In this document: piece after piece, positions 35,781 through 51,721 of the stretch | Layout: every line of letters starts with the position of its first letter | Position numbering within the stretch: position 1 is the first letter of the stretch | Virus record (IMG/VR): IMGVR_UViG_3300028676_000005 | Coordinates: 124,001 to 188,000 of that record | Strand: one strand, 5' to 3' | DNA length: 64,000 bases | Made by a program: the position numbers and the translations under genes | The notes under the pieces: model-generated | Told to the model about the DNA's origin: nothing | Seen by the model: the letters and a program-made list of their open reading frames with translations, nothing else | Databases searched by the model: none

Positions 35781-36728
35781 TCAGTTTCCTTGCGAAGCCG
35801 CACCGGCGGTAGAGTTAGTGAAGATCAGCATTGGTTCGCTGGCACCGTGGTCGTAGTCCATGTTCAGACGTTCGTTGTTCAGTGCACTACGTGCGTCACG
35901 TTCGGTGATGTAGTGTGCAGCAACAGCACTCTGTACTTCTGCAAAACGAATGGTACCACCGCCACCAGTTTGGCCGTCGATTTGAGTATCAACACCCCAG
36001 CAGACCATGGTCTCGTTGATAGCCGCATAACTGGCATCACCGTACTTCTTCTGGCAAGCGTTAGCCAACTCTTGCAGGTCGCCTTGGTTAAAGCTGCAAC
36101 CAAGAACAGCCGACGAGTTGATGTAGGTGTTGGAAACAGGAACGCTACCTTCGCTAGTAGTGGAGACAGGCTGTGGGTTAAACAGGCTGTCACGACTTGG
36201 CACGAACGGTACTGGCAGTTCGTTACCATTCTCGTCACGAGTAATCTTGTTGACTTCCGGGTTGTAGCGAGAGAAGTCAATCAGACGCAGGTAGTAGAAC
36301 ACGTAAGCTTGGCCATCGAAACCGTTCTCGATAACCCGCAGTCGATACTTGCCACGGTTAATGTTGTCAAAATCGTTATCAACCGGACGGCAGGCAACCG
36401 GGATATGAACAAACAAGTTCATGTCGATTGGTTGGTGCTGGTTAACCTTCATGATGGTCACACCCAGCGGGTTCTGACCAATGGCATTAGCACCACGGAT
36501 ACCAACACCAAAATACTTCAGCTCGAAGTTAGTCGGCATCTTTGGCCCGATAGATTCTTCGGCCATGATGTCGTAACGTTCATTGAGGGTGGAGTACTTT
36601 GGCAGGGTGAACCCTTGGCGCGTGGCCAGGCACTTCATGATAATGTTGCCGTAAGGCGTGTTGGTGGTTGTTTGTGTAGGTACTTCCGACCGGTTCTGGT
36701 CTTGAATTTCAGAGGCGGACAAAGCCAT
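35781..36728 (-). CDS. virion/baseplate protein (phiKZ gp139-like)
   Basis: STLNE, YFGVG..G, H.P, YYL, INE, ASEP; codon bias; synteny. Confidence 0.65.
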   Translation of the reverse strand: MALSASEIQDQNRSEVPTQTTTNTPYGNIIMKCLATRQGFTLPKYSTLNERYDIMAEESIGPKMPTNFELKYFGVGIRGANAIGQNPLGVTIMKVNQHQPIDMNLFVHIPVACRPVDNDFDNINRGKYRLRVIENGFDGQAYVFYYLRLIDFSRYNPEVNKITRDENGNELPVPFVPSRDSLFNPQPVSTTSEGSVPVSNTYINSSAVLGCSFNQGDLQELANACQKKYGDASYAAINETMVCWGVDTQIDGQTGGGGTIRFAEVQSAVAAHYITERDARSALNNERLNMDYDHGASEPMLIFTNSTAGAASQGN

Positions 36729-36739
36729 GGGTGAATTCC

Positions 36740-37153
36740 TTATGAACGAATAAGTTGGAAGCTTGATTTAAAGCGCATAGAATCTGAGGAGATCACCACT
36801 AAAACATTGTCACGATCGACTACCAACCGACTAATGTCTTCTTCTTGCAACTCATGACCGGTTCGGCGATAAATCCAATCGGCCATGAGAGCTTTATTAG
36901 TTGTGATGTCGACATCGGAAGTCTTACGTGGTGGAATTACCAGGGACTTAAGTTTGTTAAGCCCTGATAGGTCTACCTTGCGTACTTCGTGATAGACTGT
37001 TTCTGAACCTGGTCTGCTAACCTGAAAGACATTGTTGCCTCTACGGTTAACAGTTACCAAGTCGAATTGCGTTGCCGCAATGATGTCTTTATCAGTAATG
37101 CGCAAGTCTTCAAAGTATTTCTTTTTGATGAGCTGCGTGGCTTTGTTACTCAT
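36740..37153 (-). CDS. small virion-type protein, paralog of 61388-61741
   Basis: VRKVDL..L...VIP...DVDIT...W vs VKKVNL..L...VIP...EVDVT...W. Confidence 0.65.
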   Translation of the reverse strand: MSNKATQLIKKKYFEDLRITDKDIIAATQFDLVTVNRRGNNVFQVSRPGSETVYHEVRKVDLSGLNKLKSLVIPPRKTSDVDITTNKALMADWIYRRTGHELQEEDISRLVVDRDNVLVVISSDSMRFKSSFQLIRS

Positions 37154-37155
37154 GA

Positions 37156-39444
37156 CTAGTTACCATCCTTCTTAGGAGGAGTCTGTTTAGCCAACACTCC
37201 GTAATAAGTTTTAGGGAGGTTAAACGTGTCATCAGGCGGCGTCAACAACCCGTAGTAAGTCCTTGGGATGTAGAACGTATCGTCAGGTGTGCCCAAAATG
37301 CCGTAATACGTGTCAGGTATTATGAAGTAGTTAATTGGGTCGTCATTACCAATAGAACGGATGTACGAGTTATCTTGAACCTTAACAGTGTATTCAAAAG
37401 AGTGCTTGAACTTGTCAACACTCTTAATGAAGTTGTTATCTTTCAGCTTGATGGTCGAAGCCATGTCCGCTTCAATAGTAGGCCTATCTGGAAACAAAAA
37501 GGCCAATACAGATTCAAGTTCTCGGATACCGTCCATGTTGGATTGGACGTTAAGCATCACGTTTCCAAAGTCAGCATCAAGACTATTGCCAGGGCCTGTC
37601 AGTTTACTGTCACCAACTGACACTTCGTTTGGAAGTTCGGTAACACCGATCTCATCAGCCATCTCTTTAATGAAATGGATGGTGTACGAAGAGAGCCGAG
37701 ACATGATATCGATAAGGTCGCTTTGCTTGACCCGCATGTTTGGTTGGATATTGGTATCCCAGCCAGTCACACGTTTAAAGATATCCCAGGCAAACGTTTT
37801 GCACTCAGCCGCTGAGTAGTCAGAGAAGTCCAGGTTGTAATCACGCAACAACAGATCGTACTTGGTATATTCGCCAAGCTTAACGAAACCTGAATCGTAA
37901 ACTGTCTTAGTGGCGTTTTTAACTCGAGCACGTTTATTCAGATCGTAAAACTGACTGTACATCTTCTTGTGTTTCCACATCGCCTCATAAACCTCAAAGG
38001 CGTACTGGACAAGATAGTCAGGGGCTACAAAGTTAGCAACTGGAAACCAAATGTTGCGGATATCGTAGGCAAGGTATTCGGGGTAAATAAAGTTCTTACC
38101 GCCAGCCTCATAGACGTCTGCAAGACTAGGTGGCTTAATTCGCATCACGTTCTGGTAATAAACTGGACCAATGTCAACAGGGTGGAACCCATTGCTATAA
38201 TCGACCAGATACCGCCAAATGTGATACGCATCGGCAACTGTCATCTTGATTTGTTTGCCAGTCTTTGGATCAGACACGACAACACGACCAGTGAACTTGT
38301 TATTGCCAACCAGATAGATCCATTCGTTATACACAACAGACATCAAAGTATCAGCATGGCGGTTGGTGTAGTCACGCATGCTAGATTCTAAGACTTTAGT
38401 AGGTAGTTCCGAGTGAAGACTGTACTTACCACGTTCTAAGGCGTCCTGTTGATAGATGGCCGTTTGATCGTAGTTGTCCCTGGCTAACAACTGCTGTTTA
38501 AGAATAATCTGTTCAGTGGTGTTGTAGGTGGGTTCCCGGCCGTAGTCCTCAATGAGATTAAGGTTAAGACGGCGATACAACGGAGTTGGACTAAGATCTT
38601 CCAGCTGCGTTGCGGTACCTTCCACCATGTCAAACTTAGCCAGCGGAATATTTGCAATAGTCAGCAAATTCTCCATCAGCTTATTAAACGTCAACGTCTG
38701 CCCGGGGTTATTCTTAATCCAGGCAATGTTACGAAACAACCACATGGTTTGTTCGCGGTTAAGACTATTTTTATATTTGGAGAAATCCCCGTAGGAATCA
38801 ATGTGGCTCCAGATATAAAAGTCATGACTGTGCCGAGTGTACATGTCTTCAATGCGAATTGTGTGAATTGCTTTGATGACGTCAGCCATAAGCAAACGGC
38901 TCATGGTAGGGAGAAACAAGTTATCCGTACCGATATATTCGTTGTTAAAAAGCTGACTGACTTCAGACTTAATAAAGTTTTGAAGCTTTGGAATTAACTG
39001 GTCCTCGTTCCACAATACTAACTTTTCATTGTACCGAAGAATCTTATAGTCATCGGCGGGAATCGTTTCCGCATAAGGGATCGGGGAGAGTATGCCGCGT
39101 ATCAGTGTTGGTTGAGCTGGATAACGTTCGGTAAGCCGTTTAAACCAATAACCGCCCTTAGCGTATTCACGGAAAGTAATCAGGTGAACACGCAGGTTCT
39201 CTTTGTTAAAGACGATTTCTTCGTCGTTATCCAGAGAGTTAACGGTCATTGGTACGTCGGTCTCATGATAGTCCCCGTTAAGGTTCATGTAGTACCGCCA
39301 AGTAGCTTTATCTTCTTTTACAATATAACCCACACGCTCTAGGGCCTGGTTATATCGTTTTGCTAACGCCTCATTTTTGATAACCATGGTTCTTGCAAGG
39401 GAAAAGATGTCCCTGAAGTACCTGTCTTTATCAGCATTATTCAT
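37156..39444 (-). CDS. baseplate wedge-type virion protein (phiKZ gp128-like) with three C-terminal TYYG repeats
   Basis: WRYY.NLNGDYH..D, HSHDF, TKVLES, LSSYT; divergent from portal. Confidence 0.7.
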   Translation of the reverse strand: MNNADKDRYFRDIFSLARTMVIKNEALAKRYNQALERVGYIVKEDKATWRYYMNLNGDYHETDVPMTVNSLDNDEEIVFNKENLRVHLITFREYAKGGYWFKRLTERYPAQPTLIRGILSPIPYAETIPADDYKILRYNEKLVLWNEDQLIPKLQNFIKSEVSQLFNNEYIGTDNLFLPTMSRLLMADVIKAIHTIRIEDMYTRHSHDFYIWSHIDSYGDFSKYKNSLNREQTMWLFRNIAWIKNNPGQTLTFNKLMENLLTIANIPLAKFDMVEGTATQLEDLSPTPLYRRLNLNLIEDYGREPTYNTTEQIILKQQLLARDNYDQTAIYQQDALERGKYSLHSELPTKVLESSMRDYTNRHADTLMSVVYNEWIYLVGNNKFTGRVVVSDPKTGKQIKMTVADAYHIWRYLVDYSNGFHPVDIGPVYYQNVMRIKPPSLADVYEAGGKNFIYPEYLAYDIRNIWFPVANFVAPDYLVQYAFEVYEAMWKHKKMYSQFYDLNKRARVKNATKTVYDSGFVKLGEYTKYDLLLRDYNLDFSDYSAAECKTFAWDIFKRVTGWDTNIQPNMRVKQSDLIDIMSRLSSYTIHFIKEMADEIGVTELPNEVSVGDSKLTGPGNSLDADFGNVMLNVQSNMDGIRELESVLAFLFPDRPTIEADMASTIKLKDNNFIKSVDKFKHSFEYTVKVQDNSYIRSIGNDDPINYFIIPDTYYGILGTPDDTFYIPRTYYGLLTPPDDTFNLPKTYYGVLAKQTPPKKDGN
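37192..37326 (-). repeat. three copies of a 17-aa-period motif
   Basis: FIIPDTYYGIL / FYIPRTYYGLL / FNLPKTYYGVL. Confidence 0.95.
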
Positions 39445-39469: not shown

Positions 39470-42400
39470 ATGTCGTATAGATCTAGGTCCACTACGGTGG
39501 GCAATACCCCCGTAGATATCACTCAGGTACGGCAAAACTTTAGTAACATGCCTACGTATATTCGGTCCACTCTTCGCAACGCTGTTCCTCTTAATGGCGT
39601 GTCACCAGAAAAAGGTGATGTTGGCGGTGTAGAAACCGTTAACCAATATAAGTTACAGCGTCTCAGTGACGTTTTAAGCAACAACATCAATGCGGTGACT
39701 GACCTACGTGCCATTACGCCGTATGTGGACAAAGCAGAGCTGATTTGGGACACTATCTTGCTTTACCCTAACGGTAAGCAGGACAAGATTCTTACGTACA
39801 GCACGCTGCCTTCCAAGCTGAAGAACGTCGCATTGCATACAGAACTGCTTAAGGTGTGGGAAGAATACTTCACCAACGACTATAAGATCGAGGAAGATCT
39901 TAGCAAAATGATTAAGGATATCCTCTGGAATACGGGGAGTTACGTCCTTTTTAATCTTAGTCGTCCTGGTCTTGATTACCTGATTAATGGTAGTGAAGTT
40001 GACCCTAAACACAATTCTGAAAATGAGCCTCTTGACGCCAAAGCTAGAGAAGGTGCCGAGGCTTTCCAGCTTTACGAGCGTAAGTTCCGTGAAGCAGCTA
40101 TGAACGAGTTTAACAACTCGTTTGCAAACGACCCTACCAATAACAAGGTAAAGGTTCGTAACCTCGGTAAATTCATTAAAGACCCTAACAAGAAAGCCGC
40201 CCCGTCTGTTATTAACGGTTTGGAGCGCTTGCTTAAGGATGCCGGGTCTGTTCAGGAAGACGAGTATCGTCTGTTTGATAATGAGTTTGACCCTTCCAAC
40301 GATATTGATATCACAATTACGGATAACCCTGCTTGCTTGTTCCTACCTCGCTTTCACCAGAAGCGTCGAGAAGAGCAACTGGGTAGTGTAGTTGGTCAAG
40401 AAAACATCAACATGATGGTGGAACGCGCTCTTAAGAAAGACAAAGATCGCGATCCAATCGGTCCTAACGACACAGACAAAAAAAGAAAGAAGGCTGCTCC
40501 ATCTGACGCGACTACCCAAAACCTGGATTCGCATCAGGTTGCTGAGATTGCGCGGGAACTTTACCCAAGCCGAAACATTCGTTCTCAATCGATGCAGTTT
40601 GTTAAAAGCATTGATACTCTGTCAGTAGCACCTTACGGTCGTGGGTTGGTTTTCCATATCCCTAGTGAGGCATGTATCCCTATTCATCGTAATGGTGTAC
40701 GCCGGGCGAATCCGGATATCATTGTTCTGATGGATCGTGATACTGGTGAGTTCCTTAAGAACACTACCGACCCTGAGTACTATCAGTCCACTTCAGCTGT
40801 TAGAGGCGGGCTCAGTAACAAGAACAAGACTGGTAGCGAGAACGCTATCATCTCTAGTCTTCGTACTGTTCAGTCTGGTAAACCATGTGATTTCGACATG
40901 CGTGAGTTTGCAGACATTAACCGGTCTAACCTCATTCGTCAGTTCACGTCGGCTGTTATTAGCGACAAGGCTGATTCGGTAAGCATTACTCTGGACGAGG
41001 AAGTCAACAAGATCTTCTTGTCTCGTATGTTTGCTAAACAGGGTGTTCGTTGCTTGTATATCCCTGGTGAGGCTATTACCTACATGGCGCTGAAGTATAG
41101 CGAACTTGGTACCGGTCAATCGCTTACACAACTGGCTAAGATGCATATTGCCCGTCTGGCTGCTTTTGACGTCGCTGACACCCTGGCTAACCTCGAGGCT
41201 GCGCAACCCCATACGTTGATGAACATCACGCATGGTAAAGAGGATGGGGACCCTGAGAACACGGCTGCTATTGCACGGGCTTCGTTCTACGATAACAACC
41301 CTGGTCTTCATAGTCTGATTTCCTCTGCACAGCTTTCAGTACCAAGCATTGTGGAATCGATGCGTAACTCGTCGTTGACTATTAAAGTTAACGCCGGTGA
41401 TAACCCATTGGTAGCCGTTCCTGAAATCGACATGCAGCATATGGAGAAGAACCACTTTAAACCGGTGGATGACACTTCGCGTCAAAAAGTTATGAATGAC
41501 ATTGCTAACTACTTCCACACTCCTCGCAGTTGGTTGGACGTTAGTGACGATTCTAATAACTTCAAGATTGAAGCAATTACTGAACACGACATGGTTGTTA
41601 ACCAAGCTGCTAACTGGCAGGATACCTTGGCTGACTTCGTTGTGGACTTCATGCGTAAACATACTCGTGTAAACGAGCCTCTGTTGAACGCATTGGTCGA
41701 AGTAATTGTAAAAAACAAGAAGCTTTGGAAGCCAGAAGGTAGTAAAGAAACTATCGCTGGTGATGAGGGTCAAGTTGTAAACATGTTGTTGGCTGACTTC
41801 TTTACTGCGGTTAAGGTTAGTTTCCCTATTCCGTCCAGCATTGAGTCTACTGACAAACTGAAGAACCAGTTGGAAGCTGTTGATGCACTGGTTACTAAGT
41901 GGATGGAGATTGCAAGTGGTGGGGCTATCCTCACTGACATCGCTACCGGCCTTGGATTTACCGATGGCAAGGCAAGCGGTGAAACAATCCTCAAACATGT
42001 TAAAGCTTACTTTTACACCGAAGCATTTAAACGTTACAACATTCCAATGCCATTTGACGATGTTGTCAATGATGGTAAGAGTGGTGGTATTGCTTCTCTG
42101 GTACATGGTATTATTCATCAGCAGGCTAACTCGCAAGAGTTCTTTGTTCAATACATGACCGAGAAACTCAAGAATGATAAATCATTCCTGAAGTCTCACA
42201 AGGCTTTGCTGGATAAGCTGCGCAGCGACATTGATGAAGCCAGCGGCGAAGAAGAAGAAACTCAAGATGGTGGTTTAGACGGCGAGACTAGTCTGACTGG
42301 TGATGTTGAACCAGGTACTGGTGGCGATAACCTCGACGTTGATGCAGAACCTCCTGCTGAAGAAGAGGAAACTGAGGAGACTGGTGATACCAAACCAGGT

Positions 42401-42508
42401 ACTGAAGAAGGCGAAGAAACTGGTACTGATGAACCCGCTGACGACGGTAACTCTGGTAGCAGTGATCCAACTTCTCCAGACTACAACCCTTGGAAAGGCA
42501 AAAAATAA
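39470..42508 (+). CDS. portal protein (phiKZ gp129-like)
   Basis: 1012 aa; L..TGSY, P.EACIP.H, G.G.SL motifs; acidic C-terminal tail; synteny. Confidence 0.75.
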   Translation: MSYRSRSTTVGNTPVDITQVRQNFSNMPTYIRSTLRNAVPLNGVSPEKGDVGGVETVNQYKLQRLSDVLSNNINAVTDLRAITPYVDKAELIWDTILLYPNGKQDKILTYSTLPSKLKNVALHTELLKVWEEYFTNDYKIEEDLSKMIKDILWNTGSYVLFNLSRPGLDYLINGSEVDPKHNSENEPLDAKAREGAEAFQLYERKFREAAMNEFNNSFANDPTNNKVKVRNLGKFIKDPNKKAAPSVINGLERLLKDAGSVQEDEYRLFDNEFDPSNDIDITITDNPACLFLPRFHQKRREEQLGSVVGQENINMMVERALKKDKDRDPIGPNDTDKKRKKAAPSDATTQNLDSHQVAEIARELYPSRNIRSQSMQFVKSIDTLSVAPYGRGLVFHIPSEACIPIHRNGVRRANPDIIVLMDRDTGEFLKNTTDPEYYQSTSAVRGGLSNKNKTGSENAIISSLRTVQSGKPCDFDMREFADINRSNLIRQFTSAVISDKADSVSITLDEEVNKIFLSRMFAKQGVRCLYIPGEAITYMALKYSELGTGQSLTQLAKMHIARLAAFDVADTLANLEAAQPHTLMNITHGKEDGDPENTAAIARASFYDNNPGLHSLISSAQLSVPSIVESMRNSSLTIKVNAGDNPLVAVPEIDMQHMEKNHFKPVDDTSRQKVMNDIANYFHTPRSWLDVSDDSNNFKIEAITEHDMVVNQAANWQDTLADFVVDFMRKHTRVNEPLLNALVEVIVKNKKLWKPEGSKETIAGDEGQVVNMLLADFFTAVKVSFPIPSSIESTDKLKNQLEAVDALVTKWMEIASGGAILTDIATGLGFTDGKASGETILKHVKAYFYTEAFKRYNIPMPFDDVVNDGKSGGIASLVHGIIHQQANSQEFFVQYMTEKLKNDKSFLKSHKALLDKLRSDIDEASGEEEETQDGGLDGETSLTGDVEPGTGGDNLDVDAEPPAEEEETEETGDTKPGTEEGEETGTDEPADDGNSGSSDPTSPDYNPWKGKK

Positions 42509-49361: not shown

Positions 49362-49416
49362 AAAATGCAAAAAAAAGGAATCAACTACCCCACTCCCTTT
49401 TAAAGGAGTGAGGTAG
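49362..49416 (-). terminator. MCP transcript terminator
   Basis: CTACC.CACTCC / GGAGTG.GGTAG stem followed by T8 tract. Confidence 0.75.
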
Positions 49417-49445
49417 AAGAGACCAGATGCAACTAACCTAAACGC

Positions 49446-49535
49446 GCCTCATCGACAGTGTCAAGAGGGGTACTAGGCAGGCCCCTCTAACAGACCGTAG
49501 TAGGTCGATGGAAGGATGAGGCCTACGGGTTTCCC
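49446..49535 (-). other. putative -1 programmed ribosomal frameshift cassette
   Basis: G_GGA_AAC at 49535-49529 in frame; 6-nt spacer; paired segments GCCUCAUC/GAUGAGGC and AGAGGGG/CCCCUCU; -1 frame stops at 49473-49475. Confidence 0.8.
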
Positions 49536-51721
49536 GCTTCGATGGCGCCTTGGATGCCAGCCAGAGCTGGAGCCAGACCTTCGATGGCGATGCGCTGTTT
49601 TGCCAGCTTGGTCAGCAGACCGTTATCACCCAGGAACTCTGCGGCGTCAGTGATCTTCAGCGAACCGATGATCGGGTTGAGCGCCCAGTGTTTGTAGGTA
49701 GGGATGGTCATGACCACACCGAAGTCCTGCTGATCACGAGTCACGTTACCTTGTACAACGATGTTCTCTTTCGAGACAACGACGCCGACACCGCCCAGTG
49801 GGTTGATGTAATCGGAAGTCGAATCGTTTTGGGTAACGATCAGGATCTCACCGATCTGGCTGTCGAAGTTGGTTTCGACGGCTTTCATGGTGGTCAGAGG
49901 ACCCAGGGTACGAGCGTCGCCCAGACGGAGCAGGAAGCGGCACAGGTTCTGGTGAGCGATGATGTTCCACTTCGGAGAAGTAGCACCGCCGTATTCGGCG
50001 ATCGCGGCGATACCGGACTTGGTAGTCAGGGCCGAAACGATGTCGCTGATTTCGTTGGTGAACACGGCGCAGACTGCTTCCAGCACACCGGTGCTGTCTT
50101 GGGTCGATACGACGTCGGCCAGGGTGATCTTGCGGTTTACTGCGGCAGCTTGCACGTAGTGCATGCCTGGCAGGACGTTGGAACCCTGGTTGTTCGAGAC
50201 CACAGCATGGCCGTCGATGGAGGTGATGTACGCCAGGTGCTCAGCAGCCATGTCGAACGCTTTACGCGAGCACTGGTTGTTGATCGCCACCGACATTTGC
50301 TCGATCGCGTAGTCCAGGGAGCCCTGGTTCACGTCTTGCTTGTCGATTGGGTATTTCACAGACACCGGGTCGCCACGTTTGACGGACAGGTGCTTGTCGG
50401 CATCGAACACTTCGATACGGTAGCCGAAGTTACCGCGCGAGTTGTTGGTCACGTTACCGGTGATTTCGATACCGGATACGGAACCGTTGGTCAGGGTGCG
50501 GAACAGTGATTTCTGAGCGTCATCAGCGCGATCACGAGTGATCACGTTACCGGTTGGGATGTGCTGGAGAGCAGTGATCGAAACCTGGCCGCCGTTCAGG
50601 CGCATGACGTTCTTTTGACGCTGGTAGTTGCCGTCCATCGACACGTCCAGCAGAGGGCGGTAGCCAGCTGCTTTCAGATCGGCGAACAGGGTCTCACCAA
50701 CTTCCAGGCCGTCTTTGTCCTGTACAGCAAAACCGTTGTGACGGTTCAGCAGGATGGCCATTTTGCGGTCATCGGACGATTGGCCGTTCGAAGTCGGGAT
50801 GAAGGTGTTGTTCGACATCGCCTTGGTGTTGATGAAGAACGTCTTGACAGTGCCCTTGATAGTAGCGGTCAATTGCAGAGTCTGACCGGTGAGCGAGTTG
50901 GACTCGATCTCGTCGGTAGCGGTGTACGGACGCTGGCCAGGGGTTTCGCACAGGCCCAGGAAGTTCGGAATGACGCTCGGAACTTTCAGGAAGCTGGTCA
51001 GGTGGTTTTCGCGGCCCAGGGCATCAGCTTCCATGTAGGTAGCGGTCCATGGGGTACGGTCGGCGGCTGGAACGAACAGCTCGCGGGTGTCGTCGGTGTC
51101 CGACTCAGGGTACACAGGGTGTACAGCCAGGGCGGATTCGGCGAACATTTTGCCGGAACGCAGCAGACCGAAGATCGGTTGCAGTTCGGAGGCGGACTGC
51201 CAGGCGCTGTTGCCGTAAGCGTAAGTACCCAGACCAGCGGCACGAACCTTCATCAGGACGCCTTCGTCTTCGTAACGAACGGTCAGGGTGGCGAACAGTG
51301 CTTCGGCGCCAGGAGTCTGCAAGTGGCTCTGGGCGTTGAGGGCCATGTTCAGAGCTTTGACGGTGGTTTCCGAGCCTTCCCAGTTCTGCATCGAGAAGCC
51401 TTCCAGGCCATCGACGGTACCGTAGAAGCTTTCGGTACGTTCAACGATGTCTTTCAGCTCGCTCGGAGCAATGTTGGTGGTACGGCCGAACGAGGATTGG
51501 AACGCGGCGAAGTTCTTGTCGTTCAGACGAGTGGCCAGCATGCCATTCAGCGATTGGCTCTCAGCGCCTTGAACACGAGCCAGGTCGAACTTGCTCGAGA
51601 AGCCAGAAAAGTTTTCCTGGCCTTGCACCGCGGTCAACGATTCGTTCTTCAGTGCATCAGCGATCAGCTGAACAAGGTTACCCTCGTTCTTGAGACCCAT
51701 CTTAATCTGTTTGTAAGCCAT
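49523..51721 (-). CDS. major capsid protein (phiKZ gp120-like)
   Basis: 732 aa; strongest codon bias; N-terminal G-x-E processing sites; Q...AEALF.T, TNNSRG motifs; synteny with helicase. Confidence 0.85.
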   Translation of the reverse strand: MAYKQIKMGLKNEGNLVQLIADALKNESLTAVQGQENFSGFSSKFDLARVQGAESQSLNGMLATRLNDKNFAAFQSSFGRTTNIAPSELKDIVERTESFYGTVDGLEGFSMQNWEGSETTVKALNMALNAQSHLQTPGAEALFATLTVRYEDEGVLMKVRAAGLGTYAYGNSAWQSASELQPIFGLLRSGKMFAESALAVHPVYPESDTDDTRELFVPAADRTPWTATYMEADALGRENHLTSFLKVPSVIPNFLGLCETPGQRPYTATDEIESNSLTGQTLQLTATIKGTVKTFFINTKAMSNNTFIPTSNGQSSDDRKMAILLNRHNGFAVQDKDGLEVGETLFADLKAAGYRPLLDVSMDGNYQRQKNVMRLNGGQVSITALQHIPTGNVITRDRADDAQKSLFRTLTNGSVSGIEITGNVTNNSRGNFGYRIEVFDADKHLSVKRGDPVSVKYPIDKQDVNQGSLDYAIEQMSVAINNQCSRKAFDMAAEHLAYITSIDGHAVVSNNQGSNVLPGMHYVQAAAVNRKITLADVVSTQDSTGVLEAVCAVFTNEISDIVSALTTKSGIAAIAEYGGATSPKWNIIAHQNLCRFLLRLGDARTLGPLTTMKAVETNFDSQIGEILIVTQNDSTSDYINPLGGVGVVVSKENIVVQGNVTRDQQDFGVVMTIPTYKHWALNPIIGSLKITDAAEFLGDNGLLTKLAKQRIAIEGLAPALAGIQGAIEAGNP

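Follow-up and report, generated by a model that had tools for sequence, protein, structure and literature searches.

A peptide motif repeated on the tail of a jumbo phage baseplate wedge protein and encoded in a conserved putative -1 frameshift extension of its capsid protein: a likely docking site for DUF7941 fibre proteins

We analyzed a 64,000-nt window, that is, positions 124,001 to 188,000 of the IMG/VR virus record IMGVR_UViG_3300028676_000005. The minus-strand ORF at 37156-39444 encodes a 762-aa protein (phrog_3222), which was identified as the homologue of the phiKZ baseplate wedge protein gp128 and Goslar gp35. A phmmer search against PDB gave 9xqs_C (PHIKZ128; E 5.9e-79), 36za_sR (E 3.4e-86), and 11lx_Bh (E 1.1e-86), with homology over residues 1-598. 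The role of the protein is taken from phiKZ, where gp128 is one subunit of the wedge heterotrimer, together with two gp87-type subunits in the inner baseplate, and contacts the gp139 spoke (PMC13250141); assembly of such a heterotrimer was not examined for the window protein. The gene neighborhood is also conserved. The portal gene (39470-42508, +; 9xpe_M PHIKZ129, E 1.2e-30) is divergent from the wedge gene, as in phiKZ, and a 315-aa baseplate spoke protein of the phiKZ gp139/Goslar gp32 family (DUF7208) is encoded at 35781-36728 (-) (9xpg_A PHIKZ139, E 1.6e-33; PF23838, E 4e-92).

Between the wedge and spoke genes, starting 2 nt after the wedge stop codon, lies a gene for a 137-aa protein (36740-37153, -) with an N-terminal-domain-only architecture, which is DUF7941-like. 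In ESM Atlas, its three best clusters carry DUF7941 (scores 0.96/0.95/0.95; 218/206/206 shared features), and its predicted structure gave TM values of 0.86/0.88 to a cluster in which a third of members carry DUF7941. On the other hand, the assignment rests on embedding and predicted structure only: Pfam hmmscan found no hit at E 0.01 or better, and hhalign against a DUF7941 (PF25613) alignment was weak (E 0.021, probability 2%), although it aligned SDSMRFKSSF with PDSLRFVGEF of gp127. The gene occupies the position of the DUF7941 genes next to the wedge gene in phiKZ and Goslar, and it is conserved directly downstream of the wedge gene in nearly all loci of the clade.

The wedge protein ends in ...NYFIIPDTYYGILGTPDDTFYIPRTYYGLLTPPDDTFNLPKTYYGVLAKQTPPKKDGN*, with three 17-aa units carrying [FYN].[IL]P.TYYG[ILV]L. 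The three cores are FIIPDTYYGIL (37294-37326, -), FYIPRTYYGLL (37243-37275, -), and FNLPKTYYGVL (37192-37224, -), with a period of 17 aa (51 nt) and PDDT linkers between copies 1-2 and 2-3. The observation of three such copies in the preliminary description is therefore correct, as is its remark that codons differ between them: the units are 45-61% identical at the nucleotide level, and 3-7 of the amino acids shared by each pair use different codons, indicating conservation at the protein level. A six-frame search had been proposed there as a test, and we scanned the entire 64 kb for [FLIVMY].[ILVM]P.TYYG[ILVM]L and for plain TYYG. Only one further copy was found, LILPSTYYGLL at 49488-49520 (-). 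By a rough estimate without computation, far fewer than one match to the strict pattern is expected by chance in 128,000 codon positions. The Pfam scan of the wedge protein showed no hit to the cell-wall/choline-binding 'YG' repeats (PF01473), and the single copy at the capsid gene also argues against a solenoid repeat.

The repeats lie in a C-terminal tail (37159-37647, -; about residues 600-762) beyond the region homologous to gp128. An AlphaFold2 model showed pLDDT of about 30 and no secondary structure from residue 583 on, but the model of the full protein is poor (mean pLDDT 52), so that this is only weak evidence for an unstructured tail. The length and sequence of the tail vary among relatives. 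Absence of conservation of the repeats, together with an unchanged virion composition after their deletion, had been named in advance as an outcome against the docking-motif inference; relatives carry 0 to 4 copies on the wedge tail, and two have none while keeping the capsid copy. Thus, three sites per subunit is not a fixed property, and the wedge copies are dispensable in some lineages. [quoted passage not shown] The tail of phiKZ gp128 has no TYYG or RYLE repeat, and the repeated docking tail is specific to this clade, although the Goslar gp35 tail has its own tandem repeats. Miami, OBP, VP4B, and ZPAH34 lack both the MCP extension and the wedge motif.

The fourth copy (LILPSTYYGLLEGPA*) lies in the -1 frame relative to the MCP gene (49523-51721, -; 732 aa; PF25620 PhiKZ_MCP, E 1.7e-129; 51-56% identical to the EL and RisingSun MCPs), immediately 3' of its TAG stop codon. 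A slippery heptamer, G_GGA_AAC (49529-49535, -), is present in the MCP 0 frame one codon before the stop. A -1 shift here would add PVGLILPSTYYGLLEGPA before a TAG (49473-49529, -) and yield an MCP of 749 aa instead of 732, ending ...PSTYYGLLEGPA. We compared 39 complete MCP 3' ends from relatives, including EL, RisingSun, FishSpeaker, and IMG/VR contigs (45-100% aa identity). All 39 have a -1 ORF encoding the motif, open from the shift site. In 36 of them, a canonical X_XXY_YYZ heptamer (C_CCA_AAC, C_CCA_AAT, G_GGA_AAC, A_AAA_AAC, or A_AAC_CCG) is located in frame 0-3 codons before the stop, whereas the other three read A_ACC_CCG, which is not canonical. The recoded sequences would read ...KPDPN-RRSVSPANYGRLEYPELP in EL and ...TDPN-RLIPSTNYGRLG in RisingSun. 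In the -1 frame, Tyr, Gly, and Leu are invariant with 2, 4, and 6 different codons, respectively. No start codon precedes the motif in 25 of 32 unique relatives, and in several the -1 frame opens only 2 codons upstream, which pins the shift to this site. Independent assemblies from lake water, wastewater RNA, and a 2023 run showed no indel between the heptamer and the -1 ORF, and their substitutions there are synonymous or fall on variable motif positions: TTA>CTA (Leu), TAC>TAT (Tyr), Y>F, and L>Q. Sequencing error as the cause of the frame change is excluded by the 39 independent assemblies and three isolates. Transcriptional slippage is unlikely, because the window has only three A's in a row.

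The RNA just 3' of the heptamer (49436-49526, -) is a candidate frameshift stimulator. Its MFE is -34 kcal/mol and it is more stable than dinucleotide shuffles (z -2.49; mean z -3.3 over 34 relatives). A long-range helix starts within about 2-13 nt (commonly 5-8 nt) after the heptamer in 31 of 34 relatives, with unrelated arm sequences. Covariation did not decide whether this structure is a conserved stimulator: in an alignment of 20 divergent 3' ends, MAFFT could not align the 3' arms and zero pairs were predicted, whereas a close subgroup gave a conserved 26-bp structure with one-sided changes only and no double compensatory change. The trans-frame product was not assayed here. No such product has been reported; the RisingSun and EL proteomics papers do not mention one, and a literature search for a frameshift or readthrough in chimallivirus capsid genes, covering few subscription journals, found nothing relevant. 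The signals nevertheless fit a programmed -1 ribosomal frameshift with respect to the heptamer and the protein-level selection on a -1 ORF that is not independently initiated.

The wedge tail and the MCP copy are not the only carriers in the genome. A protein of roughly 200 aa encoded beside the phage chaperonin (EL gp147 family) ends in IP.TDYG.L in 21 contigs of the clade, including the parent contig of the window (at L136:11652-12248, where L136 denotes sequence of the parent contig outside the window). In an AlphaFold2 model, residues 1-181 are folded (block-mean pLDDT mostly 73-93) and the tail, residues 182-209, is coil with block-mean pLDDT falling to 54-61 at the end. The tail is left free in the EL gp147 model, and intramolecular docking of the motif on its own domain was therefore rejected. 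The domain had no significant fold match in PDB, and the family had no PDB sequence match. ESM Atlas places the family nearest to DUF7941 clusters, but only at 0.85-0.89, which counts as a lead. Pfam hmmscan gave no hit even at E 10 or better, and hhalign gave a probability of 0.5%, whereas the phiKZ controls gp127, gp126, and gp143 did hit the Pfam model. The architecture resembles a globular N-terminal domain with a disordered tail, but docking was not tested, and the data do not settle whether it belongs with the head-to-tail docking DUF7941 proteins.

Other lineages show a parallel arrangement. The MCP genes of phiKZ, PhiPA3, 201phi2-1, Noxifer, and Goslar all end in TGA followed by a 26-30 codon in-frame ORF; the extended sequences would read ...ADLKP-X-AGKGYRYLENGTIRYLEDGNARKLEE in phiKZ and ...PVQTN-X-TTVAASLDDILDDNVADGFIAPDIHPAP in Goslar. 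In the four lineages checked, the motif of the extension equals the C-terminal tail of that phage's own DUF7941 protein, namely the RYLENG repeats of phiKZ gp143, 201phi2-1 gp228, Noxifer gp141, and DNVADGF of Goslar gp23; the DUF7941 tail of PhiPA3 was not included. A bioRxiv preprint on Goslar (10.64898/2026.04.21.720040) reports AlphaFold3 models and negative-stain filaments, and proposes that DUF7941 proteins (Goslar gp22/gp23; phiKZ gp126, gp127, gp143) form filaments in which the disordered region of one protomer docks on the N-domain of the next. It places anchoring only at the peripheral baseplate, and mentions neither recoding of the MCP nor wedge-tail repeats. The motif of the present clade, P.T.YG.L, differs in sequence from the phiKZ and Goslar tail motifs, so that the analogy rests on architecture and co-variation, not on motif homology.

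From these results, we consider it more likely than not that the TYYG unit (clade consensus [ILV]-P-x-T-[Y/D/N/F]-Y-G-x-L) is a short linear docking peptide for DUF7941-type proteins, displayed on flexible C-terminal tails. In this view, the three copies on the wedge tail would provide up to 18 sites per baseplate, assuming six wedges as in phiKZ, with the product of the adjacent 137-aa gene as a candidate receptor. One copy would be carried by a sub-population of MCP subunits, made when ribosomes slip -1 at the heptamer with the help of the downstream stem-loop, and one by the gp147-like protein, which could chain head to tail. The wedge tail and the recoded MCP would then be anchor points that fix fibre or adaptor subunits to baseplate and capsid. 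In phiKZ, MCP C-terminal arms form the capsomer center and bind the outer protein gp244 in pentons (PMC11297242), and by homology the MCP arm here can reach the outer surface. What our analysis establishes is the sequences, their conservation at the protein level, the recoding signals, and the cross-lineage match between MCP extensions and DUF7941 tails, whereas the occurrence and rate of frameshifting, binding of the peptide to a DUF7941-type N-domain, and exposure of the tails on the virion are inferences; no experiment or complex prediction here shows the peptide binding anything. The interpretation in the preliminary description, a short linear docking motif giving three attachment sites per subunit of a baseplate-type protein, is partly supported: the baseplate identity and the docking-motif character hold up, the fixed number of sites does not, and the hidden copy after the MCP stop matters more than was recognized.

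Several alternatives were considered. The peptide may dock on a different shared partner, such as another fibre, adhesin, or depolymerase subunit or a groove on a lattice protein, recruited to capsid, baseplate, and the small adaptor proteins. This is the least unlikely of the alternatives, as three carrier classes have the motif on flexible C-terminal tails, membership of the gp147-like family in DUF7941 is unproven, and the carriers in RisingSun and FishSpeaker lie inside clusters of other virion and fibre paralogues. However, the MCP extension matches specifically the tail of a DUF7941 protein in four other lineages, and the specific candidates failed: the roughly 300-aa FN3-like paralogues in those clusters (RisingSun gp196-204) are widespread in chimalliviruses that lack the motif; the Kelch-like protein EL gp153 is present only in EL-type phages and unrelated jumbo phages, not in RisingSun or FishSpeaker; and the MCP has no clade-specific insertion that could form a pocket. 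It is quite unlikely that the motif is instead a recognition tag for the phage-encoded GroEL-like chaperonin, acting in folding or assembly of large structural proteins with the gp147-like protein as a cofactor. Every large contig of the clade encodes the chaperonin, in most of them with the motif-bearing gp147-like gene immediately downstream; the EL chaperonin has no known co-chaperone and its cognate substrates are largely unknown (PMC7185714). The aromatic-Gly-x-Leu core loosely resembles peptides that bind GroEL apical domains, a resemblance not tested here. Yet only the frameshifted minority of MCP would carry the tag, OBP has a chaperonin but no motif, the carriers in RisingSun and FishSpeaker lie 8-16 kb from the chaperonin at the end of a fibre-like cluster, and the apical groove of the EL chaperonin is described as narrow and shallow (PMC7185714). 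phiKZ and Goslar have analogous MCP extensions without encoding a chaperonin, although their genomes were not searched in full here.

Direct action without a phage-encoded partner, as weak multivalent adhesins for host surface polymers or as self-associating aromatic strands that bundle tails, fibres, or particles, would suit the tyrosine-rich core and an inferred multivalent display on capsid and baseplate, but is also very doubtful. The invariant Y-G-x-L with a fixed Pro and Thr upstream is typical of a specific protein-protein contact, and the quite different sequences in the same positions in other lineages (RYLENG, DNVADGF) fit co-evolving phage partners better than a common host ligand. 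Least probable is that the copy after the MCP stop is not translated and the region is conserved as an RNA element such as a terminator or stability hairpin, resembling the wedge repeats by coincidence. The region is strongly structured and TACGG is conserved at the nucleotide level in all relatives, but this reading is opposed by synonymous codon turnover at the invariant Gly and Leu, the -1 frame open in 39 of 39 relatives, heptamers in the correct frame, the same peptide in two other protein families of the same genomes, and the parallel in-frame extensions in the phiKZ and Goslar lineages.

The arrangement can be compared with known systems. In T7/T3, a -1 slip on an X_XXY_YYZ heptamer near the end of gene 10 (CCCAAAG in T3, close to the CCCAAAC of most relatives here) gives the minor capsid protein 10B with a surface-exposed C-terminal extension of unknown function; the extension here is only 12-20 aa, consists essentially of a motif shared with baseplate and fibre-type proteins, and is conserved across a whole jumbo-phage clade. 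UGA readthrough of the coat gene in the RNA phage Qbeta, producing the minor protein A1, is the closest analogue of the phiKZ, PhiPA3, 201phi2-1, Noxifer, and Goslar arrangement, but the A1 extension is a folded domain of about 200 aa rather than a linear peptide of 26-30 aa, and the clade of the window uses a putative -1 frameshift. In adenovirus, a short Pro/Tyr-rich peptide on the flexible N-terminal tail of the fibre (FNPVYPY) docks on the penton base; here the polarity would be reversed, with the structural platform carrying the peptide, the proteins are unrelated, and adenovirus involves no recoding. Programmed frameshifts also add Ig-like domains to phage structural proteins and act in the capsid and tail genes of Listeria phages A118/PSA, decorating a fraction of subunits with an accessory module, whereas the module here would be a peptide ligand for another virion protein, not a folded adhesion domain.

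A broader reading, which we hold only tentatively, is that across Chimalliviridae the MCP gene is routinely recoded at its 3' end so that a fraction of capsid subunits display the lineage's own DUF7941 docking peptide, by a -1 frameshift in the EL/RisingSun/FishSpeaker clade and by UGA readthrough in the phiKZ, PhiPA3, 201phi2-1, Noxifer, and Goslar lineages, with the wedge protein tail carrying tandem copies of such peptides. If so, the recently proposed DUF7941 'fibre cloud' is anchored on the head as well as on the baseplate, and two different recoding mechanisms would have been recruited for one structural purpose, with the peptide and its receptor co-evolving lineage by lineage. The 12-30 codon extensions are missed by all current annotations of these genomes. 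Our analysis adds a deeply conserved putative -1 frameshift site, and probably a UGA readthrough site, in model phages (EL, phiKZ, Goslar) where neither is annotated, in a rare case in which the function of the extension can be guessed. Chimalliviruses, which are nucleus-forming jumbo phages, are intensely studied, and structural atlases of phiKZ and Goslar appeared only in 2024-2026 and leave open how the thousands of DUF7941 subunits per virion are attached; the Goslar preprint assumes six baseplate sites. Our data suggest concrete anchors, that is, repeated peptides on the wedge tail and a recoded minor form of the capsid protein. If this holds, the capsids of these phages are 'hairy', which affects models of host encounter, adsorption kinetics, and copy-number estimates.

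The phage is an uncultivated phiKZ-like (chimallivirus) jumbo phage, and its parent record, IMG/VR contig 3300028676_000005, to which its capsid and wedge genes are 100% identical, is 229 kb long. The closest isolates are Pseudomonas phage EL and Erwinia phages RisingSun and Joad, at about 51-56% amino-acid identity. Near-identical sequence occurs in peat, lake-water and wastewater runs.

The 762-aa ORF at 37156-39444 (-) ends with three 17-aa units, FIIPDTYYGILGTPDDT, FYIPRTYYGLLTPPDDT and FNLPKTYYGVLAKQTPP. [quoted passage not shown] The copies are 45-61% identical in DNA and use different codons for shared residues. The observation of a triple TYYG motif on the tail of a baseplate-type protein, with differing codons and a further copy hidden after the MCP stop, is confirmed in full.

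Residues 1-598 of the carrier protein match the solved wedge proteins phiKZ gp128 (9xqs_C, E 6e-79) and the Goslar-type chain 11lx_Bh. In phiKZ, gp128 is one subunit of the wedge heterotrimer and touches the gp139 spoke (PMC13250141). The neighboring genes fit this assignment: the portal gene lies divergently, and a gp139 homologue lies two genes downstream. The repeats lie in a tail beyond the homologous region, which varies in length among relatives and has no predicted secondary structure, although the model is poor. The tail of the RisingSun wedge protein gp89 (sequence L003:12756-15050) and RisingSun gp201 (sequence L098:32499-34163) share a second, degenerate unit, DLGDI[TA].KQ, which looks like a decayed copy of the YG.L motif; the last repeat in the window ends similarly (GVLAKQTP).

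The MCP gene ends GCG GGA AAC CCG TAG, in which G_GGA_AAC is a canonical slippery heptamer in the 0 frame. After a -1 slip, the ribosome would read PVGLILPSTYYGLLEGPA and then stop. EL, RisingSun and FishSpeaker have C_CCA_AAC or C_CCA_AAT within the last 2-4 codons, and their -1 ORFs encode RRSVSPANYGRLEYPELP, RLIPSTNYGRLG and SINPYYYGNLGTDVNQDVGV. Among 42 IMG/VR loci, all 39 with a complete 3' end have such an ORF, and 36 have a canonical heptamer. Over 34 unique sequences, the -1 frame shows invariant Tyr (2 codons), invariant Gly (GGT 13, GGG 13, GGA 6, GGC 2) and invariant Leu (6 different codons). We regard the frameshift as very likely, although its efficiency is unknown. Of 32 unique -1 ORFs, 25 contain no ATG, GTG or TTG before the motif, and in RisingSun and several contigs the -1 frame opens only two codons before the shift point. 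The peptide can therefore only be made by ribosomes arriving in the MCP frame.

The 85 nt downstream fold better than dinucleotide shuffles (mean z -3.3; window z -2.49). A long-range helix usually begins within about 2-13 nt (commonly 5-8 nt) after the heptamer, and its arm sequences are unrelated between subgroups; the analysis did not yield formal covariation, and a stimulatory role for this structure is undecided. A separate terminator-like hairpin (CACTCC...GGAGTG followed by a T run) at window 49369-49410 (-) lies about 60 nt beyond the -1 stop, so that the stem-loop next to the heptamer is not the only candidate transcription terminator for the MCP transcript. Contigs from independent samples have no indel between the heptamer and the -1 stop, and their substitutions are synonymous or hit variable motif positions. 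A wastewater metatranscriptome contig (X17, about 96% identical) has a +1/-1 indel pair 6 nt apart at window 49547-49553, within the last codons of the MCP and upstream of the heptamer. The pair restores the frame, which is consistent with the variable, linker-like MCP C-terminus.

To examine the distribution of the motif, we compared relatives of the phage. Their wedge tails carry 0-4 copies, and two lineages have none but keep the MCP copy. In the EL subgroup the motif is longer (P.T[ND]YG[RQ]L.[FYW]P), and this form appears in both the wedge tail and the MCP extension. The more distant chimalliviruses Miami, OBP, VP4B and ZPAH34 have neither feature. Whole-genome scans identified the MCP extension, the wedge (three copies) and gp147 as carriers in EL, and the MCP extension and two small proteins in FishSpeaker; in RisingSun, of which 68 kb were examined, gp197, gp205 and gp206 were also carriers. 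These extra carriers share an N-terminal domain. In 21 clade contigs (among sequences L120-L144), including the parent contig of the window (L136:11652-12248, outside the window), a 193-224-aa member lies shortly downstream of the phage GroEL-like chaperonin and ends in [VI]IP.TDYG.L. In EL this is gp147, and the adjacency to the chaperonin may be synteny only. An AlphaFold2 model of EL gp147 has a folded domain (residues 1-181) and a free, low-confidence tail.

A second conserved member of the gp147-like N-domain family (190-195 aa; L110:6001-6573 and orthologues in the sequences L100-L114) lacks YG.L. It ends instead in a duplicated [YH][DN]G[TK].....DG[TS] unit (for example YDGTYKYDGTITY) and sits directly upstream of a 1223-aa ORF that looks fibre-like; this may be a different docking code. 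In RisingSun gp196-gp204 (L098:27022-36901) and in FishSpeaker (149427-153249), paralogous proteins of about 300 aa with an FN3-like start and a conserved C-terminal P[VI]LEL[ILV] ending alternate with the motif-bearing proteins. This family is widespread in other chimalliviruses (SPN3US 'virion structural protein 14/16/17').

While checking outgroups, we found that the phiKZ MCP gene ends in TGA followed in frame by AGKGYRYLENGTIRYLEDGNARKLEE (phiKZ sequence L052:8510-8590). The MCP genes of PhiPA3, 201phi2-1, Noxifer and Goslar (sequences L200, L201, L202 and L203) also end in TGA followed by a 26-30 codon in-frame ORF, and the peptide is conserved among the first three. This suggests UGA readthrough producing a minor extended capsid protein. 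A 2026 preprint on Goslar (10.64898/2026.04.21.720040) describes chimallivirus-specific DUF7941 proteins, which have an N-terminal globular domain plus a disordered linker. They are predicted, and seen by negative stain, to form head-to-tail filaments in which the disordered part of one protomer docks on the N-domain of the next, and they are proposed to be anchored at the peripheral baseplate.

Where we compared them, the MCP extension matches the C-terminal tail of a DUF7941 protein from the same phage. In phiKZ, the gp143 tail is TIRLLENGAARYLENGQIRYLES and the MCP extension is GYRYLENGTIRYLEDGNARKLEE; in 201phi2-1, the gp228 tail is WTRYTESDLIRYTEVGVERELEH and the extension is GFRYMEDGTTVRYEESGIARRLER; in Noxifer, the gp141 tail is AYRLLEDGTVRLLEDGTKRRLEDE and the extension is SSRKFEDGSLRSTEGGVPRTLES; and in Goslar, the gp23 tail is ATVLADNVADGFVKPTVSVVG and the extension is LDDILDDNVADGFIAPDIHPAP. 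The PhiPA3 tail was not included in this comparison. So in four lineages with quite different motifs, the putatively recoded capsid extension copies the tail of a DUF7941 protein, and the EL-type clade shows the same relation between its MCP extension and the gp147-like tails. In the window, the 137-aa gene that starts 2 nt after the wedge stop is DUF7941-like by language-model features (0.96) and by predicted structure (TM 0.86), whereas HMM methods do not detect it. The gp147-like family is nearest to DUF7941 clusters only at the level of a lead (0.85-0.89), and searches with Pfam and hhalign did not assign it to DUF7941. The wedge protein of Goslar, gp35 (sequence L204:19467-21878, -), has its own tandem repeats in its tail (LDGLWLAP, LQGLWIEP, LRGLTVTP, LNRLIVKP), which by eye resemble a L.GL[NK][FY] stretch just after the N-domain of the Goslar DUF7941 proteins gp31, gp33 and gp34. 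Repeat-bearing wedge tails may therefore be general in chimalliviruses.

The main alternatives to docking on DUF7941 proteins are that the motif binds another shared partner, that it is a tag for the chaperonin, that it is a direct adhesin, or that the region after the MCP stop is an untranslated RNA element. The chaperonin idea rests on gene adjacency and on open questions about the EL chaperonin (PMC7185714), and it is weakened by OBP and by the phiKZ and Goslar parallels.

Recoded minor capsid proteins (T7 10B, Qbeta A1), docking peptides and DUF7941 filaments are each known or proposed. In the literature that could be searched, we found no mention of frameshifting or readthrough in chimallivirus capsid genes, of wedge-tail docking repeats, or of a capsid anchor for DUF7941 proteins. 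The reading given here is immediately testable in model phages.

The simplest model is that these peptides are ligands of DUF7941-type N-domains. The proposal in the preliminary description that the repeats form a short linear docking motif with three attachment sites per subunit is only partly supported, given the 0-4 copies on the wedge tails of relatives. While the sequences and their conservation were observed directly, binding, exposure and stoichiometry are all inferred. In this model, the wedge tail would offer up to three docking sites per wedge, and proteins that combine an N-domain with a tail can chain. The frameshifted MCP would offer sites on the head, since in phiKZ the MCP C-terminal arm sits at the capsomer centre and contacts an outer protein in pentons (PMC11297242).
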